Shown here piece after piece: positions 14,603 through 35,651 of a stretch of DNA of 64,000 nt; positions within the stretch are counted from its first letter, which is position 1; each line of letters opens with the position of its first letter. The position numbers and the translations under genes are program-made. The stretch lies in sequence record NC_031107.2; one strand, written 5' to 3'. The notes under the pieces are model-generated. The model was given only the letters and a program-made list of their open reading frames with translations. It did not search any database and was not told the origin of the DNA.

Positions 14603-15139
14603 ATGGCTACATCTGCTAAGGCTCAATTGATTGCACTGTTTAACACTGCTAACGCCTCCCTGCCTCAGGCACTGGCCGAAGCAGACGTTACGTTTGGTGC
14701 TGTTGCAGCTTATACTCCGGCTGACGGCGGCGACACGCGTAACTCTAAACTCACCCTGACCGCGGTTGCCGAAAGCACCCACTTCACCGGTGAGAAAGAA
14801 CTGCACTATACTCGTCTGGCTGCAAGCATCGTTGGCGCGAAAGCGGTCACCGATGACCAGGCTGACTGGGATACGGATGCAGAAGTGTTGGCGTTCCTGA
14901 ACGCTGACGTTACGGCTGCCGGAAATACGGTTGACCAGTTCGCACTGTCCGAGCTGACCATCACCCGTACCGATGGCGCGGATGCCGACGCTGGTAAGAA
15001 AATTATCAAAGTCGACATCAAAGATGGTCACATCAAGTTCCTCGCCGGAACCCTGGCGACCTACACCATTACGCAAGAAATCACTAAAACTGACCTCAGC
15101 ACTACTGACGGTGAGCTCAACGGTTTCTCCGCTTCTTAA
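14603..15139 (+). CDS. Small virion protein with shared N module and C-terminal DGELNGF tag (178 aa)
   Basis: DTRNSKL..FTG.KELHY.RL; ends TDLSTTDGELNGFSAS. Confidence 0.7.
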   Translation: MATSAKAQLIALFNTANASLPQALAEADVTFGAVAAYTPADGGDTRNSKLTLTAVAESTHFTGEKELHYTRLAASIVGAKAVTDDQADWDTDAEVLAFLNADVTAAGNTVDQFALSELTITRTDGADADAGKKIIKVDIKDGHIKFLAGTLATYTITQEITKTDLSTTDGELNGFSAS

Positions 15140-15151
15140 TGGTTTAAAACT

Positions 15152-15181
15152 CGGGAGGACCTTAGGGTCTTCCCGCTTTTT
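15152..15181 (+). terminator. Intrinsic terminator
   Basis: CGGGAGGACC-TTAG-GGTCTTCCCG then CTTTTT. Confidence 0.75.
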
Positions 15182-15207
15182 ATTTTGTTTACCTCATGGA
15201 GTGAAGT

Positions 15208-15714
15208 ATGGCTAAGACGTTAGAAGAACTGTTTGTCGATATGATCAACGAAGTAAACCCAGACCTTGGGTTGACACTCGCGGACGTCACTTTCGGTGCG
15301 CCTTCCGAATACACCCCCACGGATTCTGGGGACACCCGCAACACGTCTTTGACCCTGACGGCCAAGGCGGACAGTGAACGGTTTACAGGTAGCAAAGCAT
15401 ACCATTATTTTCGGTTTAACTTCACCCATCCGAATGGGGCAGACACCCCAACGTTGACGACATCAGACTTACCAAGCTTGTGGGAGGACGATGCACAGGC
15501 GTTATCGGTGATCAACTTGATGTTACCGAACTACAAACTCAGTAGCAGCGAAATCACTGTGACGCGCGTGGTCGTGGACGATAAGAATACCGATATCCGC
15601 ATCACGATTAACCCTAACCATCTGAAATGGCACGGGGTGTTTGTTACCCGTGTCGTTAATGAAGGGAAGATTAACTTGCAGTGGCGTAACGCCGAGTTAG
15701 GTGGATTCAGTTAA
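15208..15714 (+). CDS. Small virion protein, paralogue of 14603 (168 aa)
   Basis: DVTFGA..YTP.D.GDTRN shared with 14603; ends NAELGGFS. Confidence 0.7.
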   Translation: MAKTLEELFVDMINEVNPDLGLTLADVTFGAPSEYTPTDSGDTRNTSLTLTAKADSERFTGSKAYHYFRFNFTHPNGADTPTLTTSDLPSLWEDDAQALSVINLMLPNYKLSSSEITVTRVVVDDKNTDIRITINPNHLKWHGVFVTRVVNEGKINLQWRNAELGGFS

Positions 15715-15763
15715 AAAGAAAAAGACCTACTACCGTTATCGGGTAGTAGGTCAGTTTTATTTT
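15715..15763. terminator. Bidirectional terminator ending the radical SAM operon (-) and the 15208 gene (+)
   Basis: GACCTACTACC...GGTAGTAGGTC flanked by A-run and T-run. Confidence 0.75.
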
Positions 15764-15768
15764 ACCGC

Positions 15769-16425
15769 TTACAGCAAGCCGTTCTCAGTCGCTACCGATT
15801 TAATGCCGGTAAAGTCCTGTGCCTCGGCCAACGTGCGGATTTTGCGCTTAAGTTCAGTCATCGACGCAAACAGCTGGGCGTCACGCTCAACAATCGCCGC
15901 CAGTACCGCTTTACACGCTGCCAAATCGAAGTTATCGAGATGGTTGTTCTGTGCATCCACCCAATACTCCGGGGCAATGTCTGCCTGGATGTATTTGGCT
16001 AAAGCCGAGCGTGATTTCTCATCGGCCTGCAACACCACACCCTGGAACATCAGGTTGGAGTGACGTTCCTCTTCGTACTTCTCAGCCAGTCGCGTATAGA
16101 TAGGCTGAATCTCTTGATAGAGATAGTTTACCGTCGAGGTCAAGCCTTTGCGGATTTCATCCAACGGCAACTCCAGCACCTTCTCAATAAACTCTTTGGC
16201 CTTACGCAACGTGAACTGGGCTTCCGGTTCACTGAGGTCGTACTCACGCAGCTTTTTCAAGGCTGCTTTATCGGACACCCCGTTTAACAGATGATAGTGA
16301 AGCAGAGTACAATACCCCTGCTTGGTCTCATCGTCTTTCGCCAGAATGTTAACATAGTTACCATGCCGGTCAATGGGGGTACCGAATTCGAAGTAACGGG
16401 CTTTTATCTCGTCATTACTAAGCAT
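15769..16425 (-). CDS. Putative tail-fibre-associated protein with DUF4376-like C-terminus (218 aa)
   Basis: C-terminal LQADEKSRSAL...WVDAQNN...L...L.AI..R....F pattern resembles DUF4376 proteins found beside phage fibre genes. Confidence 0.55.
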   Translation of the reverse strand: MLSNDEIKARYFEFGTPIDRHGNYVNILAKDDETKQGYCTLLHYHLLNGVSDKAALKKLREYDLSEPEAQFTLRKAKEFIEKVLELPLDEIRKGLTSTVNYLYQEIQPIYTRLAEKYEEERHSNLMFQGVVLQADEKSRSALAKYIQADIAPEYWVDAQNNHLDNFDLAACKAVLAAIVERDAQLFASMTELKRKIRTLAEAQDFTGIKSVATENGLL

Positions 16426-16994
16426 TCAGATTCTCCTGCTAACCCGAGGTCCATCAGCAGACCGAAGTCAACCAGTTGGAAGTGCTCAGACAGCTCCTCC
16501 CCCCAGATGAACTTCATCTTCTCTGCCAAGTCCCCGTTCTGTTCCTGGAAGACAAAGGTCTGGTGCATTTCTTCACCAAACGAATCGAACTGATGATTGG
16601 AGCGTAGGGCACGCACACGAATCCCAACGAGGTCAGCGGCGTCTGGATTCTCCGGGTCAGCCCAGTTTAACGCCAGACCAATCAGGTTATCCACATCCAG
16701 GTTCTGCGTAGAACGACGCAGGATTTCGATTTTGTGGCGCGGGAATTCCGCAACACGCTGTTCGAAGCCCGGATTACGCTTCTCCACTTGCTCAATGGAA
16801 TTGTGGGTTTTCTCAACCCCGTCCAGCGGCAGAATGACGTTCAGCCCGAAGCGTACGCACAGACGACGCACTTCATCAGTGAACGCGTCCGGCTCCACAA
16901 TAGCGTGGATGTTGTACATGCCGTGCTTTTGCATAAACGCGGCAACAAGGTGAAGATTACGCTTCGTAAAATTGTGAATCAGCAACGACTTCAT
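16404..16994 (-). CDS. Hypothetical accessory protein of the radical SAM cluster (196 aa)
   Basis: ATG after TAGGAG; overlaps both neighbours. Confidence 0.65.
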   Translation of the reverse strand: MKSLLIHNFTKRNLHLVAAFMQKHGMYNIHAIVEPDAFTDEVRRLCVRFGLNVILPLDGVEKTHNSIEQVEKRNPGFEQRVAEFPRHKIEILRRSTQNLDVDNLIGLALNWADPENPDAADLVGIRVRALRSNHQFDSFGEEMHQTFVFQEQNGDLAEKMKFIWGEELSEHFQLVDFGLLMDLGLAGESECLVMTR

Positions 16995-18297
16995 TCGCTG
17001 GTGCTCCTAATTGGGTTTTCTCGGCTGCCTCTTTACGGGCACGTACACAGGACACGCAGTAGCATTGTGACCTGTCGTTCAGATCGGTATAACGGGTGGT
17101 ACCGGTTTTCTGGTAGAAGTATTCCGCAACCAGCAGTTTCGCGGTTGTCCAACCACACTGGCGACGTTCAGCGTGATAGGCTTTGCGGTCTTCCATCTCC
17201 CCGTCACCGTTCTCGTATGATGCCGCGGCACAACTACCACACGCGTGCTTCATCGGACAACCCAGGCAGGTTTCTGGGTAGTTGGTGTACTGTGTTTGGA
17301 TTTCGTTCAACAACTTATTGTTGTCGATGTTCACGATTTCACGCCCGCGCAGTTCAGCGATGGCCTGACGGGTGGTGACCGTGGACATAAAGCGGTTGCA
17401 GCCGTAAATCTTGCGGTCGAAGCCCAGACAGGTCATGTGGGTTACGGTACCGCAGAACGGACGGACGCGCTCCGGGTTCAGACGCGTTGCTTCGTCGTCC
17501 AGGAGCTTTTGACGCCAGTCCGGGTCCCAGGTGGCCATAAAGTCCAGGCCGTCCGGGAAGATGTGAGTCAGACGGTTACGTGGGTCTTTCTCGAAACCTT
17601 TCTCAAACCAGTAGTCAATCACGTCCATCATCTGGAGTGCAATTGACATCGCCATGGTACGTGGCAGAATGTCTTCGTACGTCACGTTACCCGAGATGGT
17701 ACCACCGCCGGTGACATCCATCAGGTGCTTCATGGACTCAGCGTACTTCGGCAGGGTTTCAGAGGTAAAGGTTGCCTTGATACCCAGCTCCAGGATACCG
17801 ACCGATTTCAGGTAGTTATACCCGCGCATGGCTTTTTCGTACGACCCTTCACGCGTGGTGGTGAAGATACGGTAACGGTCGTGAACTTCTGGCAGGCCAT
17901 CGATAGACACACCGATGGACAGCTTGTCACGCCACCGCTCGATAATCTCACGGTTCAGTGGCTTATCGAACAATGTCCCGTTGGTCGAGATAGAGAAGAT
18001 GACATCGCGGTTATCACGCTTCGCCAGTTCTTCAGCCGTTTCAAACACCGCTTTCAGAATCTTCGGCTGCATCATCGGCTCACCACCGATAATGTCAATG
18101 ATAACCTCGACGTTGGTCAAGTGACGATCGCGGTCGAAACACGCATGAATGAAGTCTACTGCGTCATCGACTTTATTGTTACGCGGATATTTACGCTCGT
18201 AGCAATATTCACAGTCGAGGTTACAGGAGAGGTTGGTCACCACCTGGTAGGTTTTGGTGATTTTAGGCTCTTGAGCCGGTGCTTTAGTATCACGCAT
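16957..18297 (-). CDS. Radical SAM/SPASM peptide maturase (446 aa)
   Basis: CNLDCEYC (CxxxCxxC), IIGGEP, SISTNG, VSIDG..EVHD..R; SPASM Cys set C..C..GC / CxxCx5CxxC / C; extra C-terminal CYCVSC. Confidence 0.92.
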   Translation of the reverse strand: MRDTKAPAQEPKITKTYQVVTNLSCNLDCEYCYERKYPRNNKVDDAVDFIHACFDRDRHLTNVEVIIDIIGGEPMMQPKILKAVFETAEELAKRDNRDVIFSISTNGTLFDKPLNREIIERWRDKLSIGVSIDGLPEVHDRYRIFTTTREGSYEKAMRGYNYLKSVGILELGIKATFTSETLPKYAESMKHLMDVTGGGTISGNVTYEDILPRTMAMSIALQMMDVIDYWFEKGFEKDPRNRLTHIFPDGLDFMATWDPDWRQKLLDDEATRLNPERVRPFCGTVTHMTCLGFDRKIYGCNRFMSTVTTRQAIAELRGREIVNIDNNKLLNEIQTQYTNYPETCLGCPMKHACGSCAAASYENGDGEMEDRKAYHAERRQCGWTTAKLLVAEYFYQKTGTTRYTDLNDRSQCYCVSCVRARKEAAEKTQLGAPANEVVADSQFYEA

Positions 18298-19195
18298 TGC
18301 GATTTAACCCCGCTTGCACTACACGATTGATATACTGGTAAGCGTCGTATCCGATAACTTCGGCCAGACGATTACACCCTGAGCTAAGCACATCGAGCGC
18401 ATTGTCAGACTGGTCAAACGTGGCGTCGGATTTTACCCACACCAGATTGCTACAGTCATCACAATGTTGGCTGAAGAACTTATTGATGCTCAGCGTCTGA
18501 TGGAACCCGTTAAGGTTGTTCAGCTCAGTCAACTGGTCGTGCATTTTGTTGTACCCGTACATGAAGTTCATGACGAGATCCTGGTTCAGCGGCTTAGGCA
18601 TGAAGTTATCAAACATCACGCGGTAGCCGTTGAACTTGTAATGGTACAACGCTTCGTGGAGTTTCAGCAGGTCGAGGAACCAGTGTTTCGGTGCCAGTTG
18701 GGCACGCGTAATCACCGACCACAACGTGATGTTGTCCAGTGCGTCAAACACTTCGAAAGCATCGTAGCGACGCTCCTCAGCGATACGCAGTAACGGACGC
18801 TCGGATTCCGCATAGCCGTCAAACGAGACGAAAATGCGATCCATTTGCTTAAGCACCGGCAACTGGGCCGGGGTCAGTCGCAGACCGTTGGTGTACATTT
18901 CATGCTGTAAGTGCGGGTAGCGCTCTTTCAGTTCAGCCATGAAATCCTGGATTTTGTTGATGGCCAGTAACGGCTCACCCCCAGTCCAGTTAATCTGCTG
19001 AATAGTCGGATGGGCTTCCAGCGTTTCAAACAGCTTCTCTCTTTGGACGTCGCGCGCACTGTCTTTGACGTCCATATACCCAACACCGCCACAGAAGCTA
19101 CAATCTAAATTGCACTTCGAGGTGGTGACTATCGACAGCTCCATTGGAGCTGACGAAGGGTCGCGACGAATAGCCGACACAGCTTCTTCACTCAT
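18290..19195 (-). CDS. Second, shorter radical SAM protein (301 aa)
   Basis: CNLDCSFC, WTGGEPLL, YTNG, VSFDG; short C-terminal CDDC...GCNRL; 8-nt overlap with the next gene. Confidence 0.9.
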   Translation of the reverse strand: MSEEAVSAIRRDPSSAPMELSIVTTSKCNLDCSFCGGVGYMDVKDSARDVQREKLFETLEAHPTIQQINWTGGEPLLAINKIQDFMAELKERYPHLQHEMYTNGLRLTPAQLPVLKQMDRIFVSFDGYAESERPLLRIAEERRYDAFEVFDALDNITLWSVITRAQLAPKHWFLDLLKLHEALYHYKFNGYRVMFDNFMPKPLNQDLVMNFMYGYNKMHDQLTELNNLNGFHQTLSINKFFSQHCDDCSNLVWVKSDATFDQSDNALDVLSSGCNRLAEVIGYDAYQYINRVVQAGLNRNA

Positions 19196-19211: not shown

Positions 19212-20099
19212 TTATTCGAACGTCAGCTTGAACAGCGGGTCATCTTTGATGTCCACACCCGTCTTTAACACAAACGGCGAGTTGTAGGCATCGAGGATCT
19301 GGTTCAGAATTGCCTGACGAGCATTCACGCGCTGTAAGTCATCTAATGTGACTGTGCGAGCACGGAAGGCAGACACGACAGTTTTTTCTTCGTCTGTCAG
19401 GTCTACTTTAGTCAGCAGGAACGCTACCAGTTTGTTCAGGTCTGCTTCGGTAGAAGGTGATTCGCCGAACTTGGCTTGCACCAGGTACTGCATCCACGGC
19501 TTGCGGATACGCTTGGTGATTTCATGTTCGTCGAAAATGGCTTCGAATTGTTTTGCTTCCGGGTTCCAGATGAACTTGTAGCTGTAGGCCAGCAAGTCCA
19601 ACATGTTGGTAATCCCGTGCTTTTCAAAGCCAACAATTGGGTAATACTCTTCAACACCGGTGTATTGCTCGGTGTCTTTTGTCACCTGCGTATACCAGCC
19701 CGGCATAGAACCCATATAGTCCCAGCTCCATTCACGACGCGCCATCGGTTTCAGGTCGCTTTCAGCAAACGGAATCAGGAACATTTCCAGGTCAACCACC
19801 TGGTTCAGTACAGCGTCGCTCAGGAAATACTTCCCGTCGACCAGACGACCCCACACGTCCTGCTCACCGGCAGTGATGTGGATGTGTTGCACCGTATGGC
19901 CCGCCAGTTCGTAAGTTGCTTCTACCGTGTAACTTTTCGGATTAGCAATCTCACGACCACGCACCTTCGGCCACTCCCCCGGTAACTGGCTAATCAGGCG
20001 CACTTCGTCGAGCAGGTGGTATTTCACGCTGTCGTAGATGCTGATTTGCAGTGGGAAGTTTTGCGTTGTTTTAAACGCAAGGTGTAGATCGTTCTTCAT
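19212..20099 (-). CDS. Hypothetical protein between the precursors and radical SAM genes (295 aa)
   Basis: Clean ORF with AAGGGG RBS, tightly packed in the operon; no motif recognised. Confidence 0.7.
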   Translation of the reverse strand: MKNDLHLAFKTTQNFPLQISIYDSVKYHLLDEVRLISQLPGEWPKVRGREIANPKSYTVEATYELAGHTVQHIHITAGEQDVWGRLVDGKYFLSDAVLNQVVDLEMFLIPFAESDLKPMARREWSWDYMGSMPGWYTQVTKDTEQYTGVEEYYPIVGFEKHGITNMLDLLAYSYKFIWNPEAKQFEAIFDEHEITKRIRKPWMQYLVQAKFGESPSTEADLNKLVAFLLTKVDLTDEEKTVVSAFRARTVTLDDLQRVNARQAILNQILDAYNSPFVLKTGVDIKDDPLFKLTFE

Positions 20100-20112: not shown

Positions 20113-20319
20113 TTATCGGTTCCCCGCTCCGTGACTACAGCCACCGCTACACGTCCAGCTGCATGACCCACCACAGTTGTAGTGCGACAGTGGCAGTCCT
20201 GCAAGGTTATTGGTGCTACTAACAATCCCCTGCGTTGCGATAAAGTTATTCGCATCGGAGGTTTTGATGTAGCCCTCAACTTGCACCATTCGGTCACGAA
20301 TGTTTTTTAGTGAAATCAC
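20113..20319 (-). CDS. Cxxx-repeat precursor peptide P3 (68 aa, 4 Cys)
   Basis: GTG start after GGGGG; leader ISLKNIRDR as in P1; core NCGGSCSWTCSGGC. Confidence 0.85.
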   Translation of the reverse strand: MISLKNIRDRMVQVEGYIKTSDANNFIATQGIVSSTNNLAGLPLSHYNCGGSCSWTCSGGCSHGAGNR

Positions 20320-20362
20320 ACTAACCCCCCAATTCGTAAAAAGTTAAATGGGGCATCGGGTC

Positions 20363-20761
20363 TTAACGCATTGGTCCGGAACAACCAGAACAACCGGAGC
20401 AGCTGGAAGAACAGGAAGACGAACAGCCTGTTGAGCAGGTACCGGAGCAACCATTTGCACAGCCACCTGAACATGCACCAGAACACCCTGTACATGTTGA
20501 AGAACAGCCAGACGTACAGCTGGCAGAACAGCTTGCCCCACACGTTCCCGATGCGGAACCCGAACACCCGCCTGAACAGGATGAACACGTCCAACTACAC
20601 GTACCGCCGCAGTCATAGTGCGCCCGCGGTTGACCGCCAAATAAGTTGGAGTTGTTTGTGGCTTTGTTACGGATGTAACTTTGCACGCCCGCTGCGGTCT
20701 TTAACGCGTTGGCGTCGATAACATTCAGACGATTCTGAATATCTTTAAGGTTGATAGCCAT
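20363..20761 (-). CDS. Cxxx-repeat precursor peptide P2 (132 aa, 20 Cys)
   Basis: ATG 20761 after TAGGAG (track start 20830 moved); MAINLKDIQNRL leader; core DCGGTCSWTCS...CSGCSGCSGP. Confidence 0.88.
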   Translation of the reverse strand: MAINLKDIQNRLNVIDANALKTAAGVQSYIRNKATNNSNLFGGQPRAHYDCGGTCSWTCSSCSGGCSGSASGTCGASCSASCTSGCSSTCTGCSGACSGGCANGCSGTCSTGCSSSCSSSCSGCSGCSGPMR

Positions 20762-20772
20762 GTTGTCTCCTA

Positions 20773-21156
20773 CTACGGCCCAGAGCAGCCAGAACAGCCA
20801 GTGCAGCTCGATGAGCACGATCCAGAGCACCCGCTACATTTACCCGAGCAGCCGCCAGAGCAACTACCTGAACAACCTGAGCAACCCGAACACCCGGTAG
20901 AACACCCGCCCGTACAACTGCCTGTACATGTCGACGTACATGTACCTGAGCAACTGGTACAACTTGCCGAACAACCGTTAGAGCACGACCAGCTACACGT
21001 TCCGCCACAGTCCAACTGTCCCGGTGTCCATCCAGCGAAGCGGTCTTGGGCGTTATTCGCCTGTGCCGCTACCTGACCATCAACACGGGGGCCGGTGGCG
21101 TAATTGCTCTCCACAGTTTGCAGGCGGTCGCGTATGTTTTTAAGTGAGATTGCCAT
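20773..21156 (-). CDS. Cxxx-repeat precursor peptide P1 (127 aa, 21 Cys)
   Basis: ATG after AAGGA; MAISLKNIRDRL leader; core DCGGTCSWSCS...CSGCSGP. Confidence 0.88.
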   Translation of the reverse strand: MAISLKNIRDRLQTVESNYATGPRVDGQVAAQANNAQDRFAGWTPGQLDCGGTCSWSCSNGCSASCTSCSGTCTSTCTGSCTGGCSTGCSGCSGCSGSCSGGCSGKCSGCSGSCSSSCTGCSGCSGP

Positions 21157-21167
21157 ACGTTTCCTTT

Positions 21168-21207
21168 AAGAATAAAAAAGAGGACTCTGCCATATAGACA
21201 GGTCCTC
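21168..21207 (-). terminator. Probable terminator between the 399-aa fibre gene and P1
   Basis: GAGGAC...GTCCTC stem followed on the - strand by TTTTTTATTCTT. Confidence 0.55.
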
Positions 21208-21222
21208 GTGTTTTTAAAAAGT

Positions 21223-22422
21223 TTATCGTGTACCGGCTTCGGCTTGTACGTCGTCGCGAGTGGTGAGACTGTTGTTGACGTGTACCGCGGCCTGTACCAC
21301 ACCGCCATACGTTTTGTGCAGGTAGTTCGGGTGCGGGTTGTCTGCCGCAACGTGGTTTGCCAGGTTTTGGTTCGCCTGAGAAATCGCGTTGGTGTTATTG
21401 GTAACACGGGTATTGAGTGCGGTAATCTGGGATTGCAGGTTGTCGAACTTCTGTTGGAAGTCCTGGCCTTGCGATTCCAAATCCGCCACACGTTGGGTTA
21501 ACCCGTTAACCAGCGACTGCAGATCGTTGACCATCTTTTGCAGTTGCAGTACCAGCGAGTTGAGGTTTGCCAAAGCAAGCGACATCTTCTGGTAGTTCTG
21601 CGCCACCACGTTGAGCTGGTCGTTCCAGGCTACCAGTGATTGCACCACCGCATCGATACGGGCACCCAGAGCCGTATCTGCAGTTTTCAGGCCGTTGATA
21701 TCCTGAATAGTCGCATCAATCGCAGATTGCACGCCTGCAATCAAAGCACGAATCTCGGTTTCGGTCAGGCCGTTAGCCTGGTGAATATCGAGTTTGTGCA
21801 CATTGCCCTGGGCATTAACGTGGGCGTTCAGGGCATCGAGGAAGTCTTGCTTCAACCCGTCGATGATGGCTTTGATTTGTTCCAGCTGTACTGCCGAGCC
21901 GGAGTTAATCGCATCCTTAATCCCTGAGAGCACCGTGATGATGAATTCGAACCCGTAGATGTCACCCACGTCTTTAAACGTCGGAGCAGACGGGAACGTA
22001 TCCGGCACGTTGCGCAGGTCTTTGAAATCTACCGTACGGTCTTCGAGTTTCAGCTCTTTAATAGCTTGCTCGATGGCCACTACGTTGGCAGACTGCGGCC
22101 CACCGATGACTTGGGCAGCGACGGTAATAGAGGTAGGGATTGCCGAGTTGGTAACCACCACCGCCATAACGACTTCACGGCCTTTGGTGAGCTTCTCATA
22201 CGCCGGGTGCAGGAAGACCAACTCGTAGTCTGTCCCGCGTTTGTACAGCGTGCCAGGTTTGTTACTGGCATACATCTTAAATGTATCTGCGTAAAACGGG
22301 CCCGCCGGGAATGCAAAGGCACGGTTGACTTTACCCGAGCCCAACGTAATCGGTCGGGTAACGGCGTTAGAAGTCAGCGTGCCCCTGAGGTCAAGCGGGT
22401 ACTGAAAAACAATATCGGCCAT
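21223..22422 (-). CDS. Short coiled-coil tail-fibre-like virion protein (399 aa)
   Basis: N-terminal YPLDLRG...N domain shared with the long fibre genes; long heptad region; HVAADNPH motif; no obvious C-terminal head. Confidence 0.7.
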   Translation of the reverse strand: MADIVFQYPLDLRGTLTSNAVTRPITLGSGKVNRAFAFPAGPFYADTFKMYASNKPGTLYKRGTDYELVFLHPAYEKLTKGREVVMAVVVTNSAIPTSITVAAQVIGGPQSANVVAIEQAIKELKLEDRTVDFKDLRNVPDTFPSAPTFKDVGDIYGFEFIITVLSGIKDAINSGSAVQLEQIKAIIDGLKQDFLDALNAHVNAQGNVHKLDIHQANGLTETEIRALIAGVQSAIDATIQDINGLKTADTALGARIDAVVQSLVAWNDQLNVVAQNYQKMSLALANLNSLVLQLQKMVNDLQSLVNGLTQRVADLESQGQDFQQKFDNLQSQITALNTRVTNNTNAISQANQNLANHVAADNPHPNYLHKTYGGVVQAAVHVNNSLTTRDDVQAEAGTR

Positions 22423-22466: not shown

Positions 22467-25400
22467 TTAAGACTTGAACATAAGATTGACCTGAATCTCA
22501 TCGAGGTCAACCAGTGCACCGCCCGCAGCATATTCACACGCCACCGACAACGTCAGTGTCCCCGCATCATAACTCGCCTGGTATGGCGGGTTAAGCCCAT
22601 CATTACCAGCATGTATCACGACAGCCGGTTCAGATGGCAGATTTGGAATCACCAGTTCGCGTGCCACTCTCACCACCCCGCCTCCGTTCAACTCGCTGGA
22701 TGCGTAGATAAGGAATGGGGTATCGACATCTGTTTGACGGAACACCGTACCGGTTGCGTCCTCTACCACTTGCATGGAAAGGATTTTATTTCCCAGCGAC
22801 TGGTATTGCGCGGCGGTCAGTTGTACGGACATGTGCATCACGTACTCCATCCCGGCTGCTAAACCAGAACCCACGATATTTACAAGGTCATTGCCGGTAT
22901 TAAACGTCATTTCCGACGACTGGCTAGTAGCCGCTGAATTCAAGCAGTATTTGAAACTGCTGATTCCATTTGGCACTGCATATCGCTGACTGATCATCTT
23001 GCTGGCGTCACCCACATTGCCTGGAACGGTAAAGCGCAGCTGCGCCACCGCAGTATAGGTTTCCCCTGATACCACTGGCGACATCTGTGCCCCAATCCAT
23101 TTCATGTTAAAGCTGGCCGCTTTTGCGTTATCCCCGGATACAGCTGCGGTTTCCATGGGGTTCTTTAACCAGAAGCGGCGAGCAACGTTCTGGAAGTGTT
23201 CCCACTTGGTGACAGCAAAACCTGCAAACCGCTTCTGAATCGGTAAAGCGGGCCGCAGCTGATGTTCGATACCTTTATACAGCTCCTGACCATCGGCATA
23301 TCCCGCCACCCCAAGACCAGGGGTCGAGAGCGCAACCCGTTTCAACAGACCCATCGAACCCACACGCGATTCACGCGCCGCCGAAACGTCATGGCGATAC
23401 GCAACCCCTGCGTGTTCTTCAAGCTGTTTCACCTGACCCAGACGTTTTACCTGCTGGATATCCTGCCCCGTAATACGGTTAGCATCGGTTGTCACCCAAC
23501 CCACGTACAGCAAACTGTCAGTGTCGGGGTGACGTACCGTGTCCATCAGATAACTTGCGCTACCGTTAACTACCTGAGCGTGCAGATAGAAAGTCCGATT
23601 GGCGTGTGCCGTTGGGTAAACATCACTGAGGTCAATCGACCAGGTCGGGAGTGTATAGCTGGCACTACCGAACGACAGCTCCACTTCTTCCGTCAGATAG
23701 AGAATCCACCCTTCGGCAGTCTCCACCCCAGCCAAAATAACCGCTTGCGGTGAAGCCGTGGTCGCAAAGGTAGGGTCAGCAACGAAGTTTGCCAGCGTAT
23801 ACGCATCCCCGGAACAGAACACACGGTCTGCTTTCGAATAAATGCGCGCGACACTATTCCAGCTGCCAGCACCCATGTAGACCACAGACTCAGGCGTGTG
23901 TGACGGAGCCATACGACGCAGTGCCGTTTTCCCTGCCACTTTTGTCCACGTCCCGCTACTGTAACGCAACCCTGCCGCATAACCGACCGATGCCAAATCC
24001 CCAATCAGGCGCAGCCCTAACGTGTACGGTAACCAGATAGCAAAATCGGTTCCGTTAGTGGAGGCCATAATCGGCTGACCCACACGTTTGGTTTTCCCAC
24101 CGGTAATCTCTCCCAACATCGCGTAGTTCAGACCGTAGTCCAGGTTGTTGAAGAAATCGAGCAGGTTTACTGCTGCCGTCGGGAACGATACATTGCCACC
24201 GGAAATGGTTGGCGTCATTGTGAAGTAATAGACGTCAAGGGTATTGACGTTGTTCACTACACGTTGTGCCGAGACCTGAATCAGCGTCAATGGATGCGCC
24301 GTACCAATACCCATAAACCAGACAGCAAACAGCGCTTTCCCGGCCTGATTAGCGGCATTGATGTATTCCGATGCGTACCCGTTTGCGGCCCCTGTCGGTG
24401 CCCCGTCCAGAATAGATTGCTTCATCTTATTCCATTCGGTTTGCGTCAGGTTCAACCGGTCAGCTGCCAAGGCAAAGTTACCCGGTACGTTCTTGTACGG
24501 GAAAGACTCAGGTCCCGTACAGTACCAGCCATTCAGCACACCCACGCCTTGAGACGGCGTCAGCATCAACGGGATGTTGCTCAACTGTTCATAGAGGGTG
24601 CTATCTACTACACGCCGCGCGTTGTCCGGGCCGTAGCCGCTGTAGCCTGCCACGTTATACGGTTTGTTCGGGTCAACTTCAACCTCGATTGCTGTCCGTG
24701 TACGTGGGTCAGATAGCCACAACAGATTCGAACCACCCAACCCTAACGGATACGACATCCCAGTGGAGTAAACAGACCCACGCCCCTGGTTTAACGTTGC
24801 CGCACTGTTTTGGGTGGCATCGGCAAACGCGGTATAGTCGTAGCGCAGGAAATCGTACAAGGATTTCCCTTTGGCAGGCCGGATAGCAATCCCTGGCATC
24901 TGGTCAGCATCACCTGCCAGCCACTGCGACACCACTACATCATTTACTACCGTCGCGAACGTGCGGTTGTTTGCCACACCACCGTGCCATTTGCCTTGGG
25001 TAAATCCATCAAACGTACCGTCGGCATATTTCACGGTTGTGACATCAGCAACCAGCGGGAAACGCTGCGGACATTCCAGCGTGACGGTGTTCGCTTCGGT
25101 ATCCAGTACAAAACTGGTTTGCCATTGGCTGAAATTCAATACGTCACCGTTAGGTGCAGCGAACCACATTGTTGGGGCATGGTTAACGCGCACCTTACCT
25201 TCGCTGACCCCGTACATGTGGTTGGCTTCTGGCCCATGTACGAAGTTAGTGGCGTTCGCCCATTTCGCTGCCGCTTCTGGCGTCAAATAGGTGACGAACG
25301 GGCCTGTTTGTGAGGCTGCTGTTTTCTGGCCGTAACGAATCATCAGGTTATCACCCGACATCCCGCTTTCACCGGTCAGTATCACGCGTTCAAACGTTAC

Positions 25401-27650
25401 CGTGGCATTGGCAACGTCCGCGGCTTTCAGTTTCCATGCCGCAACAGAATACTGCGCGTTTGTCAGCACGTTACGCAGCAAGAACACATTGGTGCCTACC
25501 GCGACGATATCATCCGTGGACACATTTGGCACAAACGCCGCCGTGGTAACGTCTGTCCCGTTACCGTTACGGTAGTCCGGGAAGTTAACCTGAGACACCG
25601 CGGTGTGTTTCGCATGATCCATCGACCCGTTGAACAACACCAGATAACGCTTACCATCCGACCCCAGACACACCGCACCGTCAGTACCGGTAATCAGAAT
25701 CGCCACCAGAGACACACCAGGGAACTTGCTCATACCCGCAGGCATATACTTCACCGACGTCTGTTGCACGTTGGTCAGTTTCTGGTCGTTGGTGATGTCA
25801 GCATACGCGTAGTAAATCGCTTCACTACCCGCTATCCCGTTACTGCCGTTACGCAGGGAATAGAGACGCCCTTGCTGATATCCGATTAACCCTTTCTGGT
25901 AGGTCTGGTTTTTGGTGAAGCCGGAATAGTTCCCCATTGCTGGAATCGGTAAGAACCCGCCATTACCAAACTTCGCCCCTGGAACTGTCCAGGCAGGCAG
26001 CAACGTGTTGATTTTGTCGCTGAGCTGGTCAATCTTCTGATCCAGTAAGAAGCCCTGACGTGACGTCACGACTTTATCATCCGTCGTATCAATCGCATCC
26101 CAGATTTTCAGCAGGCCACTGGCGGTGGTTGAGCCATACGGAACATTGTCGAGGTCGGCAATGGTGTGCGTGTGGTCACTTTTCGCTTTCGTGGCGAGGG
26201 CAGCGGTCAATGCTTTAGTAACCGGCTTTTCCAGTGGTGTGGTGTTGTCCATCTTGTCCACACCAAAATCCGCTTTGGTCAGTGTCAGTACCTGATTGCC
26301 GCTGGCGTCTTTCACGAAGCGTTTGCCGTTGATGCTGTAAGTGTCGTCCACATACAGGTCAAGTTTGGCTTTCAGGTCGGTAACCGCTTTCTGCGAGATG
26401 GCTGCACCGGTGGCCACGGAGTTAGAGATGTTCGTGATGGAGAACAGACCCGCCACTGCGTTGGTTGCGGTGGGCAACTCGACGTTCATGTACACCGGGT
26501 TGGTTTGCTTACCGCTACCGTAAATCTTGAGCGTGTCGCTGGATTTAAAGTAGGCATTGGCAGGCAACAGTTTAACCGCGGTCAAATACATCCCGACCAT
26601 GTCCGGCGTTACCAGGAACACCGAGTTAAAGACCGGGGCCAACACATCCATGCTGTAACCGCCCCACTTATCCCCAGCTTTCCCCGAATGCACCCACAGG
26701 GTATTGAGGCCCGCCGAAAACTCCACCCCGATACCGGTGTCGTTGTTGTCCTGGTCGGCTTTTAATACCAGCGGCTTTGGTGAGGTGATAATGAATTTCT
26801 CACCTTTCAGGCTAATGAGGTGGCCCGCGGTGGTCTGGAACGTAATCGCGTCGTTGTTGAGGACACGCAGACGACCCAGCAAATCCCCCAGGGTGTTATC
26901 CATTAACAGATCAACGTGAGCCTGGGAAATCCCCGATGTCGACATCAGGTTAACGAGCTCAGCCAACGTACGACCAAACGCTCTGGTAGCATCAACCGCT
27001 TTACCGACAACCGGCAACGCACCCACGTCGGTCGTGGTATAGCCGTGCGCATTGCTTTTCAGGTGATGCTGATACATCTCCTGCTCAAACACCGTGTTAC
27101 CGTTCTGATAGATCATATCCGTCAGTTCAGTAAACGCCGTATCCAGGTCACCGGCACGGGCCAGAATCCCTACGCGAATATCTTCGATGGCTTTTACCAC
27201 TTCATCGCGCAGAATAGCTTCTTCGATGTTTTCTGGCGGGTCAATCGGGGAAATCACCGGTGCGTATTTCATCAACTCTGACCAGTCCACGTTACGTGGG
27301 TCTTTCAGGTCAGTGCGCACCAGGTATTTACCAATCTCTGACTGCGGCAGACGATACTGACGGCCAACAGACAGGATTTCATAATCGACTTCGGTGGCTG
27401 TCAGTAGGATGAAGCCCCCGTAGATTTGGTCTTGCTCAGCTTCGGCCAGCTCTTTGAAATAGTAACCGAGATAATAATCCAGACCCTCGATAAGGGTACG
27501 TTTACCGCCAGGTGCCGTTGCATCCTTAACAGTAAGTTTCAGCCCAATGCGGTAGAAAGGACCTTCGGCAGGAATCACCGCATTGTATTTATTCGGGTAC
27601 GTTGCGGTCTTGAGCGTACCGTTAAACTGCGCCGCATCTTCTCTCGGCAT
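22467..27650 (-). CDS. Long tail-fibre-like virion protein (1727 aa)
   Basis: ATG 27650 after TAGGAG (track start moved); fibre repeats ATNAVAGL, STTASGLL, LTKADFGVDKMDNT. Confidence 0.75.
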   Translation of the reverse strand: MPREDAAQFNGTLKTATYPNKYNAVIPAEGPFYRIGLKLTVKDATAPGGKRTLIEGLDYYLGYYFKELAEAEQDQIYGGFILLTATEVDYEILSVGRQYRLPQSEIGKYLVRTDLKDPRNVDWSELMKYAPVISPIDPPENIEEAILRDEVVKAIEDIRVGILARAGDLDTAFTELTDMIYQNGNTVFEQEMYQHHLKSNAHGYTTTDVGALPVVGKAVDATRAFGRTLAELVNLMSTSGISQAHVDLLMDNTLGDLLGRLRVLNNDAITFQTTAGHLISLKGEKFIITSPKPLVLKADQDNNDTGIGVEFSAGLNTLWVHSGKAGDKWGGYSMDVLAPVFNSVFLVTPDMVGMYLTAVKLLPANAYFKSSDTLKIYGSGKQTNPVYMNVELPTATNAVAGLFSITNISNSVATGAAISQKAVTDLKAKLDLYVDDTYSINGKRFVKDASGNQVLTLTKADFGVDKMDNTTPLEKPVTKALTAALATKAKSDHTHTIADLDNVPYGSTTASGLLKIWDAIDTTDDKVVTSRQGFLLDQKIDQLSDKINTLLPAWTVPGAKFGNGGFLPIPAMGNYSGFTKNQTYQKGLIGYQQGRLYSLRNGSNGIAGSEAIYYAYADITNDQKLTNVQQTSVKYMPAGMSKFPGVSLVAILITGTDGAVCLGSDGKRYLVLFNGSMDHAKHTAVSQVNFPDYRNGNGTDVTTAAFVPNVSTDDIVAVGTNVFLLRNVLTNAQYSVAAWKLKAADVANATVTFERVILTGESGMSGDNLMIRYGQKTAASQTGPFVTYLTPEAAAKWANATNFVHGPEANHMYGVSEGKVRVNHAPTMWFAAPNGDVLNFSQWQTSFVLDTEANTVTLECPQRFPLVADVTTVKYADGTFDGFTQGKWHGGVANNRTFATVVNDVVVSQWLAGDADQMPGIAIRPAKGKSLYDFLRYDYTAFADATQNSAATLNQGRGSVYSTGMSYPLGLGGSNLLWLSDPRTRTAIEVEVDPNKPYNVAGYSGYGPDNARRVVDSTLYEQLSNIPLMLTPSQGVGVLNGWYCTGPESFPYKNVPGNFALAADRLNLTQTEWNKMKQSILDGAPTGAANGYASEYINAANQAGKALFAVWFMGIGTAHPLTLIQVSAQRVVNNVNTLDVYYFTMTPTISGGNVSFPTAAVNLLDFFNNLDYGLNYAMLGEITGGKTKRVGQPIMASTNGTDFAIWLPYTLGLRLIGDLASVGYAAGLRYSSGTWTKVAGKTALRRMAPSHTPESVVYMGAGSWNSVARIYSKADRVFCSGDAYTLANFVADPTFATTASPQAVILAGVETAEGWILYLTEEVELSFGSASYTLPTWSIDLSDVYPTAHANRTFYLHAQVVNGSASYLMDTVRHPDTDSLLYVGWVTTDANRITGQDIQQVKRLGQVKQLEEHAGVAYRHDVSAARESRVGSMGLLKRVALSTPGLGVAGYADGQELYKGIEHQLRPALPIQKRFAGFAVTKWEHFQNVARRFWLKNPMETAAVSGDNAKAASFNMKWIGAQMSPVVSGETYTAVAQLRFTVPGNVGDASKMISQRYAVPNGISSFKYCLNSAATSQSSEMTFNTGNDLVNIVGSGLAAGMEYVMHMSVQLTAAQYQSLGNKILSMQVVEDATGTVFRQTDVDTPFLIYASSELNGGGVVRVARELVIPNLPSEPAVVIHAGNDGLNPPYQASYDAGTLTLSVACEYAAGGALVDLDEIQVNLMFKS

Positions 27651-27740
27651 TGCAAAGACTCCTACTTTGAAATAAAACGGATACCCCACCCCGAAGGGTG
27701 GGGTTACCTACGGACGGGTGACGTCCGCAGACGTTCCGTC

Positions 27741-30700
27741 CTAAGAGGACCACTCACCTAGTTTGTTGCCATCGGCAGCCTGCTCACGCTTCAGCTCAGA
27801 CAACACCCACAGCCAGGCTGTAGAGGTGAGGTGGAAGGGGTTACGCTTCTCCGCCACAAATTGCGGGCTGGCGGAGCGAATCTCCCACGCAGAGTCTTCC
27901 GTTAACGTTGTGATAACGGTACCACTGCTGTCTTTCAACGGCAGGCTTAAAGAGAAGTTTAGCGCTTCTCCGCTCGCCGTATCTGCAGGTTTAAACCACA
28001 GATACACCGCTTGTCCTGCGGCAAGGTTTGTTGCAGTTAACGCGACACGCTGATCCGACGCCAGCGCCACCCAGCTATTAGCGCTACCGGGGTCAGGGAT
28101 ACGTGAACCGAGAATAACACCCCCGGCCATGTGTGGCCCTTTCAACGTACCGTCCATCGATGCAATGGCTTTCGCTGTTGCTTTATCCGGATACCAGCAC
28201 AGCAAGATAGGGTCGCGGAATCGCATTGGGGCAACGCCCGCTGCAGCCGCTTTGGCCACTGTCCAGTTGTTGGGCAGTTTGTTTGACGGGAACAACAACG
28301 AACCACGCACCGCACGCGACGAGTGGAACGGTAAGCCCAATTGTCCACGATGTGACAGCTCAGCATTACCTTGGCCACAGGGCACACTCACCCACTCTGT
28401 CAGTTCCCAGTTCACTGGTTCGCCGTACGTAACAGGGTCAACAGTCTTGAGACCGTATTCCATGTCACGACTACTGTCAATACGACGTTCCAGGTTGCTG
28501 TCAACGTACGCCTCAAACAGCGAGCGCAGATACTGGTATTTATCCAGATTCAACGCTGCCACGTTCGGGTTCATTAACGCCGGACCCACTCGCAGACGTT
28601 CACTTTTGGCCAGGCTGTTAAGTCGAACACCAATCCCTTCCCCAATAAAGTAGGAAAGAAGGTCGATGGGCAACTTAAGCTCGACCTGTTGTTCCCGCAC
28701 CGCGACCATACCCGGTTGTCCACACAACACAGACAACCGCAGAACCTCGGTGTTAACGTTATAGCGATAACGTACCGCCCAACGTGGAGAGAACGTGCCA
28801 GTAAAGGGCGCATTCACTCCCAGGTCAACATAATCGAGACAATCCCCCGTCGGAATCCAGGTATTCGATAACATCGTCAGAGTAATTCCGCGGGTGATTT
28901 CAAACTCGCCCACCATCGGAATGCCTGATGTGCTCACCGCGTCATTGGTCACCTGCTGTGTCCGGGAAAGTATCCCGTAATAGCATTTGAAATCGCTGAG
29001 TGAGATACGCAACGTCTTGTTACAACCCGGTATGTTGTTTCGGGCACTGAGAAGCACCAAACTCGGTTCTTCCGCATGAGCCACAGCCGCCGCAGTGTTC
29101 TCAATGTCGATAATCATCCCGCCTTCGAACGTTGGCGCATTGCCTTCTTTCGGGTTAAACGGGGTGAACCAACACATCGGGTGACTGTTTTCATTCGAGA
29201 ACCAGGCCAGGATATCTGACTTGTTGTTCCCGGTATGGTACCAGTCAATCATCCCACGCGTGCCGTAGAACAGGTTACCGAGGTTGTTGCTACTGTAGTG
29301 CTTCACCATGCCGTAAGTAAACGGTTCGGGTTGCACCTTCGCCAGCATCTTAAAGCGTGGGTTATCCGAGAACGCCCAGTCACTCGCTTTCACACTGTGG
29401 GCATGTTTCACCCCAATGTGTGCCTTTACCTCTTCCGATGGCCCAAAGTCAAACATCGTATCGAACGACACGGTCGACTGACTGCCTGGGGAGGCTGGTA
29501 AATCGATGTAGCCAATAAAGCCACGTTCAATATCCAGGTCTTGCGACAGGATAGGCTCTGCGCGCGAATACAACGACGTCGTCAGCATGTTCACGTACAG
29601 GTAATGACGCAGACCCCCTGGCTTCGTGACGAACTCCTGCAAGTATTCCAGTTTGGTCTGGGTACCGGAGAAGTATAAAGGATACAAGTCGTCGTAGATG
29701 TCGAATTGTAGTGCAGCGGCTTTGGCTGTGTCGTTACACTCAGCCTTAATCGCGATACAGTGCTCATCCACACCCAACGGTGGTTCTGCCACTACATACA
29801 GCGGAGACGCACCCGTTGCCACTTGCTCACCGTTTAAGTACACGGTGATTTTCCCGCCACCCGCCACGTAAATCTTGAACGCCCCGGTTGCGGTTTTCAG
29901 ACGCAACTTCGCCAGCACAGACACGACCGACAAATCACCCATACCGTTTAGCGTCTTACCGATCTGTTTCCCTTGAATCGGGAACGGTGGTTGTTCGGTG
30001 AGGCCAGTAAAGGATAGTCCTGCCCCGGTGTTGATAACCGCGTTTGGCCAGGTCTCCTCCATCTGGTTGTCAGGCGAGAACCAGTTGAACATCGGCGTGG
30101 TTTGCAAGTCAATCGTCCCGGATACCACACCCTCTTTACGGGTACCCGCATCCAGGTAGAAGTAACGCAAATCCGTCACCGATAAGCGGTAGGTATTCAA
30201 CGTCCAGGTCGAGGCTTTCACCGCAGTAAAGTCGGTGACAGTACCTGACTTGGCGTTGGCCAACGCTGCCGCGACCACTTCCAGACGATCACTTAATGCT
30301 TTCAACACAGACGGCGTTACACCACGACCTGTCGCTAACCCTGCCTGGTTTTTGGAATAACGTCCAATCCCCTGCACCTGTTGCGACGCTTCGTAGATAT
30401 TCAACTCAGACCAGTCATGGTGGTGACCAGACGGACTCAGCTCCGTTAGTGCTTCGGACAGGTCATCGGACAACGGCTTATCGACGTCGGCGATGTTTGA
30501 CGCGTTCCCAAGACCCAGGTCTGTTTTGGTCAGTGTGCGGCTACCGTCATCCATGGCTTTGTTGTTCAGCAACGTGGACTTTAACACGTAACCGCCCATA
30601 TCCGCTTCATATCCGGTTAACGAATCCGGCGTAGAAGCAACACCGCTGGTTTCCGTACCTGGCCCTTTCTTCAACTTCGCCACACCTTTGACGGTGGTGG

Positions 30701-31910: not shown

Positions 31911-31922
31911 TCAGAGTTCTCC

Positions 31923-34900: not shown

Positions 34901-35651
34901 AAGCCATCCAACCCAGATTCGGCAACCCTGTCCACGTCTGATACCCTTTCAGGTCGAACAGGAACTCCGCAACATAGTTGCCCACTTGTCCCGGAATATC
35001 CCAACGTGACTGAGAAAGTGTTACCCGTGTGCCGTGGGCCACCGTGGTCTCTTGGTTGAAAGTAAATTTCCCCATATTGTCGTAGTCAAGACGATCGGTA
35101 AATGCGTTCGTCGTGACCGGATACAGGTTATTAGTGACCGGGTTAGGGAGGTTGATGACTTGGCTGATTTTCTTGCCGATAGCAACAATCGCATTCATCA
35201 GCTCCAGTTCGCCGCTCCATTTCTCACGGTCAAACTGAATGTCTACCGGCGGGAAATAGACCTCACCGACGACTTGCTCCCACTGGCATGTCGTTGGGAA
35301 CACATCCGCATTGGCTGTACGTTCCGCAGTAATCTGTGCCTGGGTAGCTATAGCGTTACCCACAGCGTGGTAATCTACGGTGAAGTCTTTGTAATACTTA
35401 GGGTTTGTTATCCAAATCATCCCGTGGGAGACGTAGCCTGTGCGCAACATAGCGGTCATGTACGGGTGAGTGATAACGTAGTCATCGCCTAAGGTTAATT
35501 CTTTGCCGCCGCTCTTGACCACCAGGGATGTGGTGTAAAAAGGGGCGTACGCGGGGACGAGCATTTTGTACTTCGTACCAATCAACGTCACCGCTTCACC
35601 GGTCTGTTTGTTCCCCGGTTCTTTGAAGTGTGGGTCTAAGACGACAGCCAT
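31923..35651 (-). CDS. Long tail-fibre-like virion protein (1242 aa)
   Basis: LDP...N N-domain, HVTRKDNPH, ATATQFGLIQY, LDKVANTSD repeats. Confidence 0.75.
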   Translation of the reverse strand: MAVVLDPHFKEPGNKQTGEAVTLIGTKYKMLVPAYAPFYTTSLVVKSGGKELTLGDDYVITHPYMTAMLRTGYVSHGMIWITNPKYYKDFTVDYHAVGNAIATQAQITAERTANADVFPTTCQWEQVVGEVYFPPVDIQFDREKWSGELELMNAIVAIGKKISQVINLPNPVTNNLYPVTTNAFTDRLDYDNMGKFTFNQETTVAHGTRVTLSQSRWDIPGQVGNYVAEFLFDLKGYQTWTGLPNLGWMALKNITKGVGVQEVWFDYSMTDKAWRVYLHTEQTTQKDYNLVLFPFALTKFAQPFTVRVERAGKLVTFTLKQNNAVLGTFTLDVSAPPSDVLTVFNTYQLQTNFLNPTETRLNLSGRVGDSVTFKSFPGIDLSVDVQNDVYQLMVKYHNIVRKLYDDAPAHAHVTRKDNPHGDSWGAIRALELNGIASDSTLAYGKTQAQLADYVNNLLPKLASLANKLLRNAGTTQTINGTFGTKPGLTSVSSALTATETGGVGAQFTVDPKAIRFLGRDSQTINAGNNPITFQGGANQLILYPDSRGLLWNGKKLLDPTTVAPYLPGNTGGGDGLFYGTPTTTMQINGNGIQSVPFVCTFVPPTATDVNLLAMRSLATDFGQAEDLAATPALIAKLDAAFTGKLEKVKAYINDLPLTSSVYIDKLTFNLDKVANTSDADLQVSTLQQAELDKYAVVGHTHPAATFGVKAATATQFGLIQYGLAVDDAALALDGSVVIDQTTTITQLEGVAKGLDSGAAIDIIRFGVPGNDQIQNGIQTTGWMVTLAAETYFVGQEYNVPLTTLNLTELFPNAYEDTTFGVFVDIVGETAKYVILANPNTAETDTMTKVGSIDTSEDGIDVAEIHNVTRLGAFRELEEHLEDDNAHIKRTLTMSEFGYTSGYGKGGPVWASGVPSNERGEADWRMALADQYWPMSKMQYDGQNARWSFDPDGVTVNDYRFIHHTFPLHRNAGIQHTWIPTDAGTDTLLESIVAGWQDETTFFNRISILLCRGSRITDSNGAFCYAGLGINFGAGRNVVIGFTPTKIGGSASTWAALSPSVSFSSNRATDGTMTLTCVVTLAGLIYDVVITLGEATKNVVCTARAAGTTQTIDLTNRIRPDYIDLSALWTDATLPIHHGLGGLYGATTTAAITYPASTTYQRFYNATLLDYIANFSVLNRARFLEFNYVGGNSSLSSLAMTLAEAERTQVAAVNPLPLPSYVNEDRVIAFCQNNLARAVIFRD

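Follow-up and report, generated by a model that had tools for sequence, protein, structure and literature searches.

A tip-less tail fibre gene, three Cys-repeat peptide genes and two radical-SAM genes in one unit of Erwinia phage vB_EamM_Asesino

The DNA analysed here, a window of 64,000 nucleotides, belongs to Erwinia phage vB_EamM_Asesino (KX397364.2), to which it is 100% identical; this jumbo myovirus is SPN3US-like and falls in the genus Erskinevirus. A window position is the record position minus 124000. Our subject is a block of minus-strand genes in the order gp190, gp189, gp188, gp187, P1, P2, P3, gp182, gp181, gp180, gp179, gp178, in which a tip-less fibre gene (gp187) is followed by genes for three Cys-repeat peptides (P1 to P3) and for two radical S-adenosylmethionine (radical-SAM) enzymes. 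A sequence-only reading of this DNA had proposed that the peptides form the tip of gp187, and that a modification of the type found in RiPPs (peptides made on the ribosome and altered after translation) is used here to build a structural part of the virion. One part of that proposal stood: the genomic evidence supports placing the Cys-repeat proteins and the radical-SAM enzymes in tail-fibre morphogenesis, not in an unrelated natural-product cluster. The unit ends in a DUF4376 gene, related enzymes and repeat proteins lie in tail modules elsewhere, and in one prophage the repeat is fused to a fibre. We give an even chance to the reading that the region is a tail-fibre sub-module whose radical-SAM system modifies Cys-repeat proteins that join the fibre apparatus. 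That the peptides are themselves fibre parts of the virion is, judged from their genes, an evenly balanced proposition.

gp187 (399 aa; 21223-22422, minus strand, as are all genes of the unit) is annotated as a virion structural protein and matched phrog_2163 (E=1.8e-109). Its tail location comes through its orthologue, SPN3US gp167, which gave 880 peptide-spectrum matches in virions versus 5 in tailless heads and is classed 'Tail' in published proteomics of SPN3US, not of Asesino. Residues 1-215 (21778-22422) form a fibre N-terminal, baseplate-side domain of the phiKZ gp131/SPN3US paralogue-C type (PMC5105663). This domain matched the N terminus of the long fibre gp189 by BLASTP (E=6e-11, 27% identity), and it matched Goslar gp025 at E=3e-30; this is the degree of similarity that places gp187 in the type. 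The sequence-only reading had given the same domain to all three long fibres. This was borne out for gp189. For gp190 and gp188, which had no match to gp187 by BLASTP alone, it is only suggested by weak, collinear hhalign alignments (E=4e-4 for gp190 and, weaker still, E=0.011 for gp188). On its own, the domain was matched by tblastn in about 140 other jumbo phages, and AlphaFold modeled a beta domain at residues 20-105 with a predicted local distance difference test score (pLDDT) of ~80.

Residues 221-359 (21346-21762) make up a coiled coil of 20 heptads without a break. Power at the 3.5-residue period was 5.1 in this segment versus at most 0.3 in the N-domain and the tail, and AlphaFold modeled a helix across it. 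A profile search of the PDB returned trimeric fibre coils, with the needle protein gp26 of phage P22 as the top match, a ranking that reflects coil composition only. The long coil read from the letters alone is thus well founded, and so is the fibre motif said to follow it: HVAADNPH occupies residues 357-364, and the stop comes 35 residues on. Among the long open reading frames (ORFs) in all six frames of the window (25,337 residues), the pattern H-x(2-6)-[ND]PH was confined to gp187, gp189 and gp190. In relatives from phages Goslar, RTH11 and Kodama, the same motif starts each of 13 repeats of ~61 aa. The tail of gp187 (residues 357-399, 21226-21354; H-x4-NPH ... AEAGT) resembles one such fibre-repeat unit. 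Its conservation score of 0.77 is second best in the family, with 0.82 for residues 204-225 and 0.60 for the coil. The tail is collinear with a Goslar repeat, yet the hhalign match reached just E=0.03 and was outscored by 1 of 20 shuffles, so we dropped the idea of a single Goslar-type unit of ~61 aa and retain a mere resemblance. In the AlphaFold monomer the tail had no secondary structure and low confidence.

The protein was also said to lack a receptor-binding head, and comparison with its relatives bears this out. Goslar gp025 (682 aa) and an RTH11 protein (692 aa), the nearest relatives of gp187 outside its clade, share its N-domain and continue with five ~61-aa repeats and a terminal Peptidase_S74 domain; gp187 stops after one motif. 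All 44 clusters of full-length gp187-type proteins, at 43-96% identity, were 396-400 aa long. The headless form is therefore a fixed design and not a truncation. Fold searches of PDB and BFVD gave no match to gp187, and no relation to fibritin or foldon appeared in PDB sequence, PDB profile or Foldseek searches, which leaves gp187 outside the fibritin whiskers as far as these searches reach. We conclude that gp187 is a tail protein consisting of a baseplate-side domain, a coiled coil of ~20 nm and one fibre-repeat-like tail, without a distal domain. As a matter of record quality, the gp187 homologue of Salmonella phage SPFM7 (P0046) looks block-scrambled relative to every other phage. The gp187 and gp182 homologues of Salmonella phages SPFM1, 7, 8, 9, 10, 12, 14 and 20 (P0045-P0051, P0098-P0102) share one low-coverage match pattern, which suggests a problem with the records.

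The peptide genes directly follow gp187. P1 (20773-21156) encodes 127 aa, a 49-aa N-part followed by a run of 21 Cys residues, and carries no annotation in GenBank. P2 (20363-20761) encodes 132 aa, with a 50-aa N-part and a 20-Cys run, and is annotated as gp185 with a longer start. P3 (20113-20319; gp183) encodes 68 aa, a 48-aa N-part with a 4-Cys motif. The range first singled out, 20363-22422, takes in gp187, P1 and P2 and leaves P3 just outside. All three matched phrog_6085 (E=5.7e-48, 3.7e-55 and 5.2e-27 for P1, P2 and P3). They are paralogues in which a conserved N-part of 46-50 residues leads into C-[GN]-G-[ST]-C-S-[WF] and then into the Cys run. Within the run, Cys recurs at a spacing of 4, sometimes 3, in a chain composed almost wholly of C, S, G and T, which for P1 and P2 amounts to 20-21 Cys in ~80 residues (a CXXX run). 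The cores contain no Asp, Glu, Lys or Arg. All three paralogues were present in 9 of 9 phages aligned, representing at least five genera. P1 always had 21 Cys, P2 had 20-23 and P3 had 2-4; the 21-Cys run of P1 recurred in 19 of 19 further jumbo loci from IMG/VR. The first Cys fell at residue 47-51 in the jumbo phages examined. The N-parts had been described as opening with amphipathic heptads. The pattern is there, with hydrophobic residues L5, I8, L12 and V15 in 3-4-3 spacing in 27 of 27 sequences examined; its extent is only about two heptads. Docking of retained N-parts as a coiled coil, possibly in a P1/P2/P3 heterotrimer, is conjectural. The suggestion that the core might act as an adhesin fares less well: a C/S/G/T core shared unchanged by Asesino and Stratton is hardly what one expects of a specificity determinant.

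Why had these peptides escaped notice? At 20316-20900 the GenBank record annotates gp186 (plus strand) and gp184 (another frame) across the Cys-repeat DNA and omits P1. The same mis-annotation recurs in SPN3US (gp166), Huxley, Phobos, CR5 and ChrisDB, and the three genes are missed or mis-framed in most published genomes of the SPN3US-like clade. Hence, existing proteomic searches could not have seen P1 to P3. In SPN3US, only the wrong-frame ORF gp166 is annotated, and the true peptide ORFs are absent both from the annotation and from the published lists of detected proteins. SPN3US proteomics is silent on the peptides because their ORFs are unannotated there; the cores are also devoid of Lys and Arg.

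The two enzymes, gp181 (18290-19195; 301 aa; phrog_1802) and gp180 (16957-18297; 446 aa), both contain the CxxxCxxC motif and match the Pfam Radical_SAM family, PF04055 (E=1.1e-14 and 2.6e-14, respectively). NCBIfam matches of gp181 cover its N-terminal half only. gp180 aligned with NF047865, the PapB model (E=8.4e-38; residues 24-359 on positions 12-319 of 330), and with TIGR04115, the model for maturases of CXXX-repeat targets (E=3.9e-35; residues 16-375 on positions 5-345 of 359). These matches span nearly the full length and include the C-terminal auxiliary-cluster (SPASM) region. Its best PDB match was 5wgg (E=4.1e-13), which we take to be the SCIFF maturase CteB, and it also matched TIGR03906 (E=5e-18). 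We conclude that gp180 is, by these alignments, a SPASM-type peptide maturase of the thioether-forming kind.

What such a maturase might do here can be judged against known systems. PapB, which acts on PapA to give freyrasin, and the ranthipeptide/sactipeptide systems (CteB/SCIFF) likewise pair a radical-SAM/SPASM enzyme with a precursor whose Cys residues are regularly spaced, and the product is a row of small thioether rings; gp180 aligns with the PapB model over nearly its full length, and CteB is its match in PDB. However, PapB needs an Asp or Glu acceptor C-terminal to each donor Cys (PMC12373016), whereas the cores of P1 to P3 have neither. PapB chemistry is therefore inapplicable as such to the phage peptides, and the ring acceptors would have to be Gly, Ser or Thr. 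Of these, Gly is known to accept sactionine links, with Cys-to-Gly alpha-carbon links described from another system (PMC10288494). The phage unit also departs from PapB/PapA in having two enzymes and three long precursors in a virion-structure operon, with no recognizable genes for export or cleavage.

The curated pair TIGR04115 (maturase) and TIGR04114 (target) shares with the phage system a Cys at every fourth residue beside a SPASM maturase, and such bacterial loci are numerous. To our knowledge, that family is defined by genome context only. P1 to P3 answer to the description of its targets: Cys at every fourth residue, a long run, and genes near a maturase gene, which here share a transcription unit with the two enzyme genes and lie about 0.9-3.8 kb upstream of them. 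Yet P2 scored 16.4 bits against TIGR04114, below the curated threshold of 20, and P1 and P3 had no match to it in the NCBIfam profile search. Many bacterial members differ further in bearing a signal of the twin-arginine translocation (TAT) type where the phage peptides have their N-part. A precedent for a modified protein that is kept in place is QhpC, the small subunit of quinohemoprotein amine dehydrogenase, which the SPASM enzyme QhpD crosslinks by thioethers and which stays in the larger assembly and is not released. The TIGR03906 match ties gp180 to QhpD; in contrast to the phage unit, acidic residues act as acceptors there and the crosslinked subunit is part of a periplasmic enzyme.

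The layout of the transcription unit links the peptides to the fibres. From gp187 on, the intergenic gaps are 66, 11, 43, 13 and 16 nt, followed by three gene overlaps. The sole strong terminator is a hairpin immediately past gp178 (15724-15752; no strand assigned), a bidirectional structure with an 11-bp stem and a T-run on each strand. At the other end, three long fibre paralogues, gp188, gp189 (1389 aa) and gp190 (1242 aa), lie upstream of gp187 in the same direction (22467-35651); their SPN3US orthologues, gp168-170, are tail proteins in the published proteomics. The last gene before the terminator, gp178 (15769-16425; 218 aa), has a DUF4376 domain at residues 113-204 (PF14301, E=3.4e-9; 37.6 bits versus a Pfam cut-off of 25). 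The Mu U/Tfa and Alteromonas V22 fibre chaperones have DUF4376 as their C-domain, and a score above the cut-off places gp178 with the Tfa-type tail-fibre chaperones that it resembles. Because fibre genes and a DUF4376 gene thus bracket the unit, whose single strong terminator comes at the end, we tie the peptides to fibre morphogenesis.

Other lineages tie them to it as well. In the phage collection, full-length gp187, the peptide N-part (that of P2) and full-length gp180 occurred in 62, 62 and 64 records, respectively, all from one phage clade with identical gene order. Distant homologues of the enzyme (24-37% identity) adjoin CXXX-run proteins in tail modules of ~130-kb gut phages and Bacillota prophages. 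On one gut-phage contig (L017), the enzyme is 24% identical to gp180 and falls in the same PHROG. There, a 193-aa protein comprising a 110-aa N-domain and a 21-Cys run comes directly after a fibre-like ORF of 369 aa, and proteins belonging to tail-fibre PHROGs come next. This arrangement recurs in 21 IMG/VR contigs of up to 141 kb. Two further phage groups had longer runs; in one, the non-repeat domain comes after the run. Of 80 bacterial loci encoding a related enzyme, 58 also contained a CXXX-run ORF. In several of the Bacillota, the ORF immediately upstream is homologous to the fibre-like one of L017, and Tail_P2_I or tail-protein homologues are close by.

The strongest case is a 31-kb P2-like prophage (L047), which makes the connection within a single chain. 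Its genes run V-W-J-I-fibre-unknown (250 aa)-rSAM-rSAM-tail-assembly chaperone-sheath. The 384-aa fibre has a Phage_tail_fib N-domain (E=1.8e-40), fibre repeats, and a CXXX run as its final ~40 residues; it has no other distal domain, and no ribosome-binding site lies ahead of the internal Met that precedes the run. The 250-aa protein, in the position of gp182, has a weak profile link to it (E=4e-4). By its gene content and order, this is the same module as that of Asesino, with the repeat fused to the fibre instead of encoded after it. Since enzyme homologues adjoin CXXX proteins in tail modules and the repeat is joined to a fibre in L047, the tie between the peptides and fibre morphogenesis extends beyond the jumbo clade.

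The Cys-run proteins of these other loci varied in several ways. Runs of exactly 21 Cys, as in P1, occur in L017 (7439-8020), L022-L037, L044-L046 and L050, which may be coincidence or a structural constant. Three architectures were seen among the bacterial loci (L069-L148): a TAT-type signal and a run in Bacteroidota and Ignavibacteria, often in tandem arrays of up to five genes; an N-domain of ~105 aa and a run in Bacillota; and a run followed by a C-terminal domain. The longest run in the bacterial loci had 95 Cys (L071). Three gut-contig matches were set aside, L019 and L020 as SCIFF loci and L021 as a bacterial TAT-signal CXXX locus; none had phage tail context.

We propose the following mechanism. 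gp180, with gp181, would install many small thioether rings along the C/S/G/T repeats. Stiffened by these rings, a flexible chain would become a rigid and reduction-proof rod, and it would do so in the cytoplasm, where disulfides are unavailable. One or more such rods would then be attached to the fibre apparatus, for which the simplest site is the conserved tail of the tip-less gp187; this attachment in trans would be the counterpart of the one-chain arrangement in L047. As carrier of the peptides, gp187 is the most economical choice when set against gp188-gp190 or the baseplate; gene position makes it a tentative candidate, and we regard the assignment as rather doubtful. Separately encoded tips have precedents. 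The T2/S16-type gp38 adhesin, which sits on gp37, and TfaMu of phage Mu are small proteins whose genes come right after the fibre gene and which bind the distal fibre end. TfaMu remains attached (PMC7882524). Neither of these tips is known to be enzyme-crosslinked, as proposed for P1 to P3, or to consist of Cys repeats, and no such protein was among our matches. On a broader scale, radical-SAM enzymes that staple Cys-every-fourth repeats into rigid distal rods, fused as in L047 or supplied in trans as in gp187 with P1 to P3, may be a widespread way of building fibres, found also in ~130-kb gut phages and many Bacillota prophages. We rate this generalization as possible, at somewhat under an even chance.

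Several observations weigh against this proposal. The link between gp187 and the peptides is one of adjacency within a single clade, where co-occurrence is not phylogenetically independent and by itself proves little. A place for the peptides in the virion is predicted from their genes. Some 8 residues ahead of the first Cys stands a conserved [FL]-x-G motif, which is reminiscent of a double-glycine cleavage site and speaks mildly against retention of the N-part. The jumbo N-parts are unrelated to the fibre repeat (hhalign E=0.1-0.6), and their profile found nothing significant among 7,041 ORFs of other lineages' loci. A search of 1.84 billion representative proteins found no fusion of the N-part; its 15 matches were mostly small ORFs of Asesino's clade, with three borderline matches to proteins of 652-1068 aa (E 4e-4 to 8e-4). 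The scores of gp180 are well below both curated cut-offs, at 130.4 bits versus 340 for PapB and 122 versus 350 for TIGR04115. The L047 fusion is a single case in the collections searched, and no close relatives of its fibre tail were found in IMG/VR or metagenomes. Finally, because Bacteroidota CXXX proteins carry a TAT-type signal and had no phage context in the loci read, the maturase family is not confined to phages.

Some candidate likenesses of the N-part were rejected along the way. A reading of the N-parts as a degenerate Goslar-type repeat of ~61 aa, and a 'SLKN' helix thought common to the lineages, were likenesses by eye that the hhalign comparison and the profile search, respectively, did not uphold. 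One of the 15 matches (P0105) is a chimeric contig. An apparent fusion (P0106), P3 with a 140-aa extension, was set aside because the two parts meet within a homopolymer run and the extension is absent from near-identical phages. The latter lies at 10001-10633 of L010 (ENA ERZ2916498 NODE_35, 222.5 kb), and its extension is beta-rich with a GC content of 0.39 versus 0.47. The near-identical phages L011 and L012 have a normal 68-aa P3; the extension in L010 may be a true domain gain or a sequencing artefact.

Perhaps P1 to P3 are ordinary RiPPs, whose leaders of ~50 aa guide the maturases and are then cut off, and whose crosslinked cores diffuse away once the cell lyses, to act on competitors, host defences or neighbouring cells? 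Adjacency to the fibres would then reflect only shared late expression. The class of gp180 is typical of RiPP maturases, the peptides have a leader-then-core layout with several paralogous precursors, the [FL]-x-G motif stands where a cleavage site might, and none of SPN3US gp161-166 is among the virion-assigned proteins. However, searches of Pfam, PHROG, NCBIfam and folds gave no recognizable peptidase, transporter, immunity gene or leader-recognition domain in the unit. For leader recognition, the radical-SAM domain of gp180 starts near residue 20 without an N-terminal extension, and gp182 and gp179 have no recognizable domain. The N-parts, moreover, are long and conserved paralogue by paralogue. 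The 21 Cys of P1 across genera point to a constraint on length, and P3 has only 2-4. Elsewhere, the non-repeat part can be a domain of ~105 aa, an entire tail fibre or a portion C-terminal to the run, and the Asesino unit closes with a fibre-chaperone-like gene. We consider release of free peptides unlikely.

A different objection accepts the fibre context and removes gp187 from the peptides' path: gp187 might be a self-sufficient whisker or adaptor, like T4 fibritin or the P22 needle, with an anchor, a trimeric coil and a small C-terminal element, and the peptides would sit on gp188-190 or on the baseplate or be transient assembly factors. T4 fibritin and the P22 gp26 needle do resemble gp187 in combining an anchor domain with a long trimeric coil and little or nothing distal. 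The fixed length of 396-400 aa with a conserved tail fits such a protein, as does a coil resembling P22 gp26 and reovirus sigma-1. Any of the four fibres could be the client of the DUF4376 protein, and L017-type phages have the CXXX module but no gp187 homologue. Against this stand the distal repeats and S74 domain of the nearest relatives outside the clade, the position of the peptide genes directly after gp187, the CXXX-bearing fibre of L047, which is likewise without another distal domain, and the lack of a fibritin or foldon match in sequence or fold searches. A self-sufficient gp187 seems improbable to us. A last alternative has the Cys-repeat proteins uncrosslinked and binding metal or iron-sulfur, either to buffer redox state or as a reserve or scaffold serving the two cluster-rich enzymes. 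It would suit the extreme thiol density of 20-21 Cys in ~80 residues, and crosslinking is so far a prediction from sequence. We consider it highly improbable: the repeat proteins are strictly paired with a SPASM enzyme of the peptide-maturase type in many lineages (in 58 of the 80 bacterial loci), the C-x3-C ladder fits the curated target family TIGR04114, and a scaffold role leaves the fibre fusion in L047 unexplained.

If fibre-mounted Cys-repeat rods prove right, they bear on how phages stiffen their fibres. Phage particles are assembled in the reducing cytoplasm, and disulfides are not available for stiffening. Thioether ladders made by enzymes would solve this in another way. We know of no earlier case of RiPP-type chemistry building a structural part of a virion, and we found no description of a CXXX-repeat/radical-SAM fibre module in the literature searched. 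The mounted-rod reading would also provide a function for a large, orphan family of bacterial and phage CXXX-repeat proteins, and would account for two radical-SAM genes whose role is obscure although every SPN3US-like phage has them annotated.

The remaining genes of the unit are less informative. gp182 (19212-20099; 295 aa), an accessory protein with a confident AlphaFold model (pLDDT 89; predicted template modelling score, 0.84), had no fold match in PDB or BFVD except itself and was restricted to Asesino's phage clade in the searches made. gp179 (16404-16994; 196 aa) overlaps both neighbouring genes and matched phrog_7988 only. Between gp187 and P1, the 66-nt gap contains a weak hairpin of 5 bp and a T-rich tail (21187-21201), which could modulate read-through into the peptide genes. 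The perfect 11-bp hairpin at 15724-15752 lies between the convergent genes gp178 and gp177 and is probably a terminator shared by both. Adjoining the module, gp176 and gp177 (window 14603-15714) are small paralogues with counterparts at 15044-16179 and 18849-20208 of L010, and Pfam matches on that related contig assign them to DUF7941.

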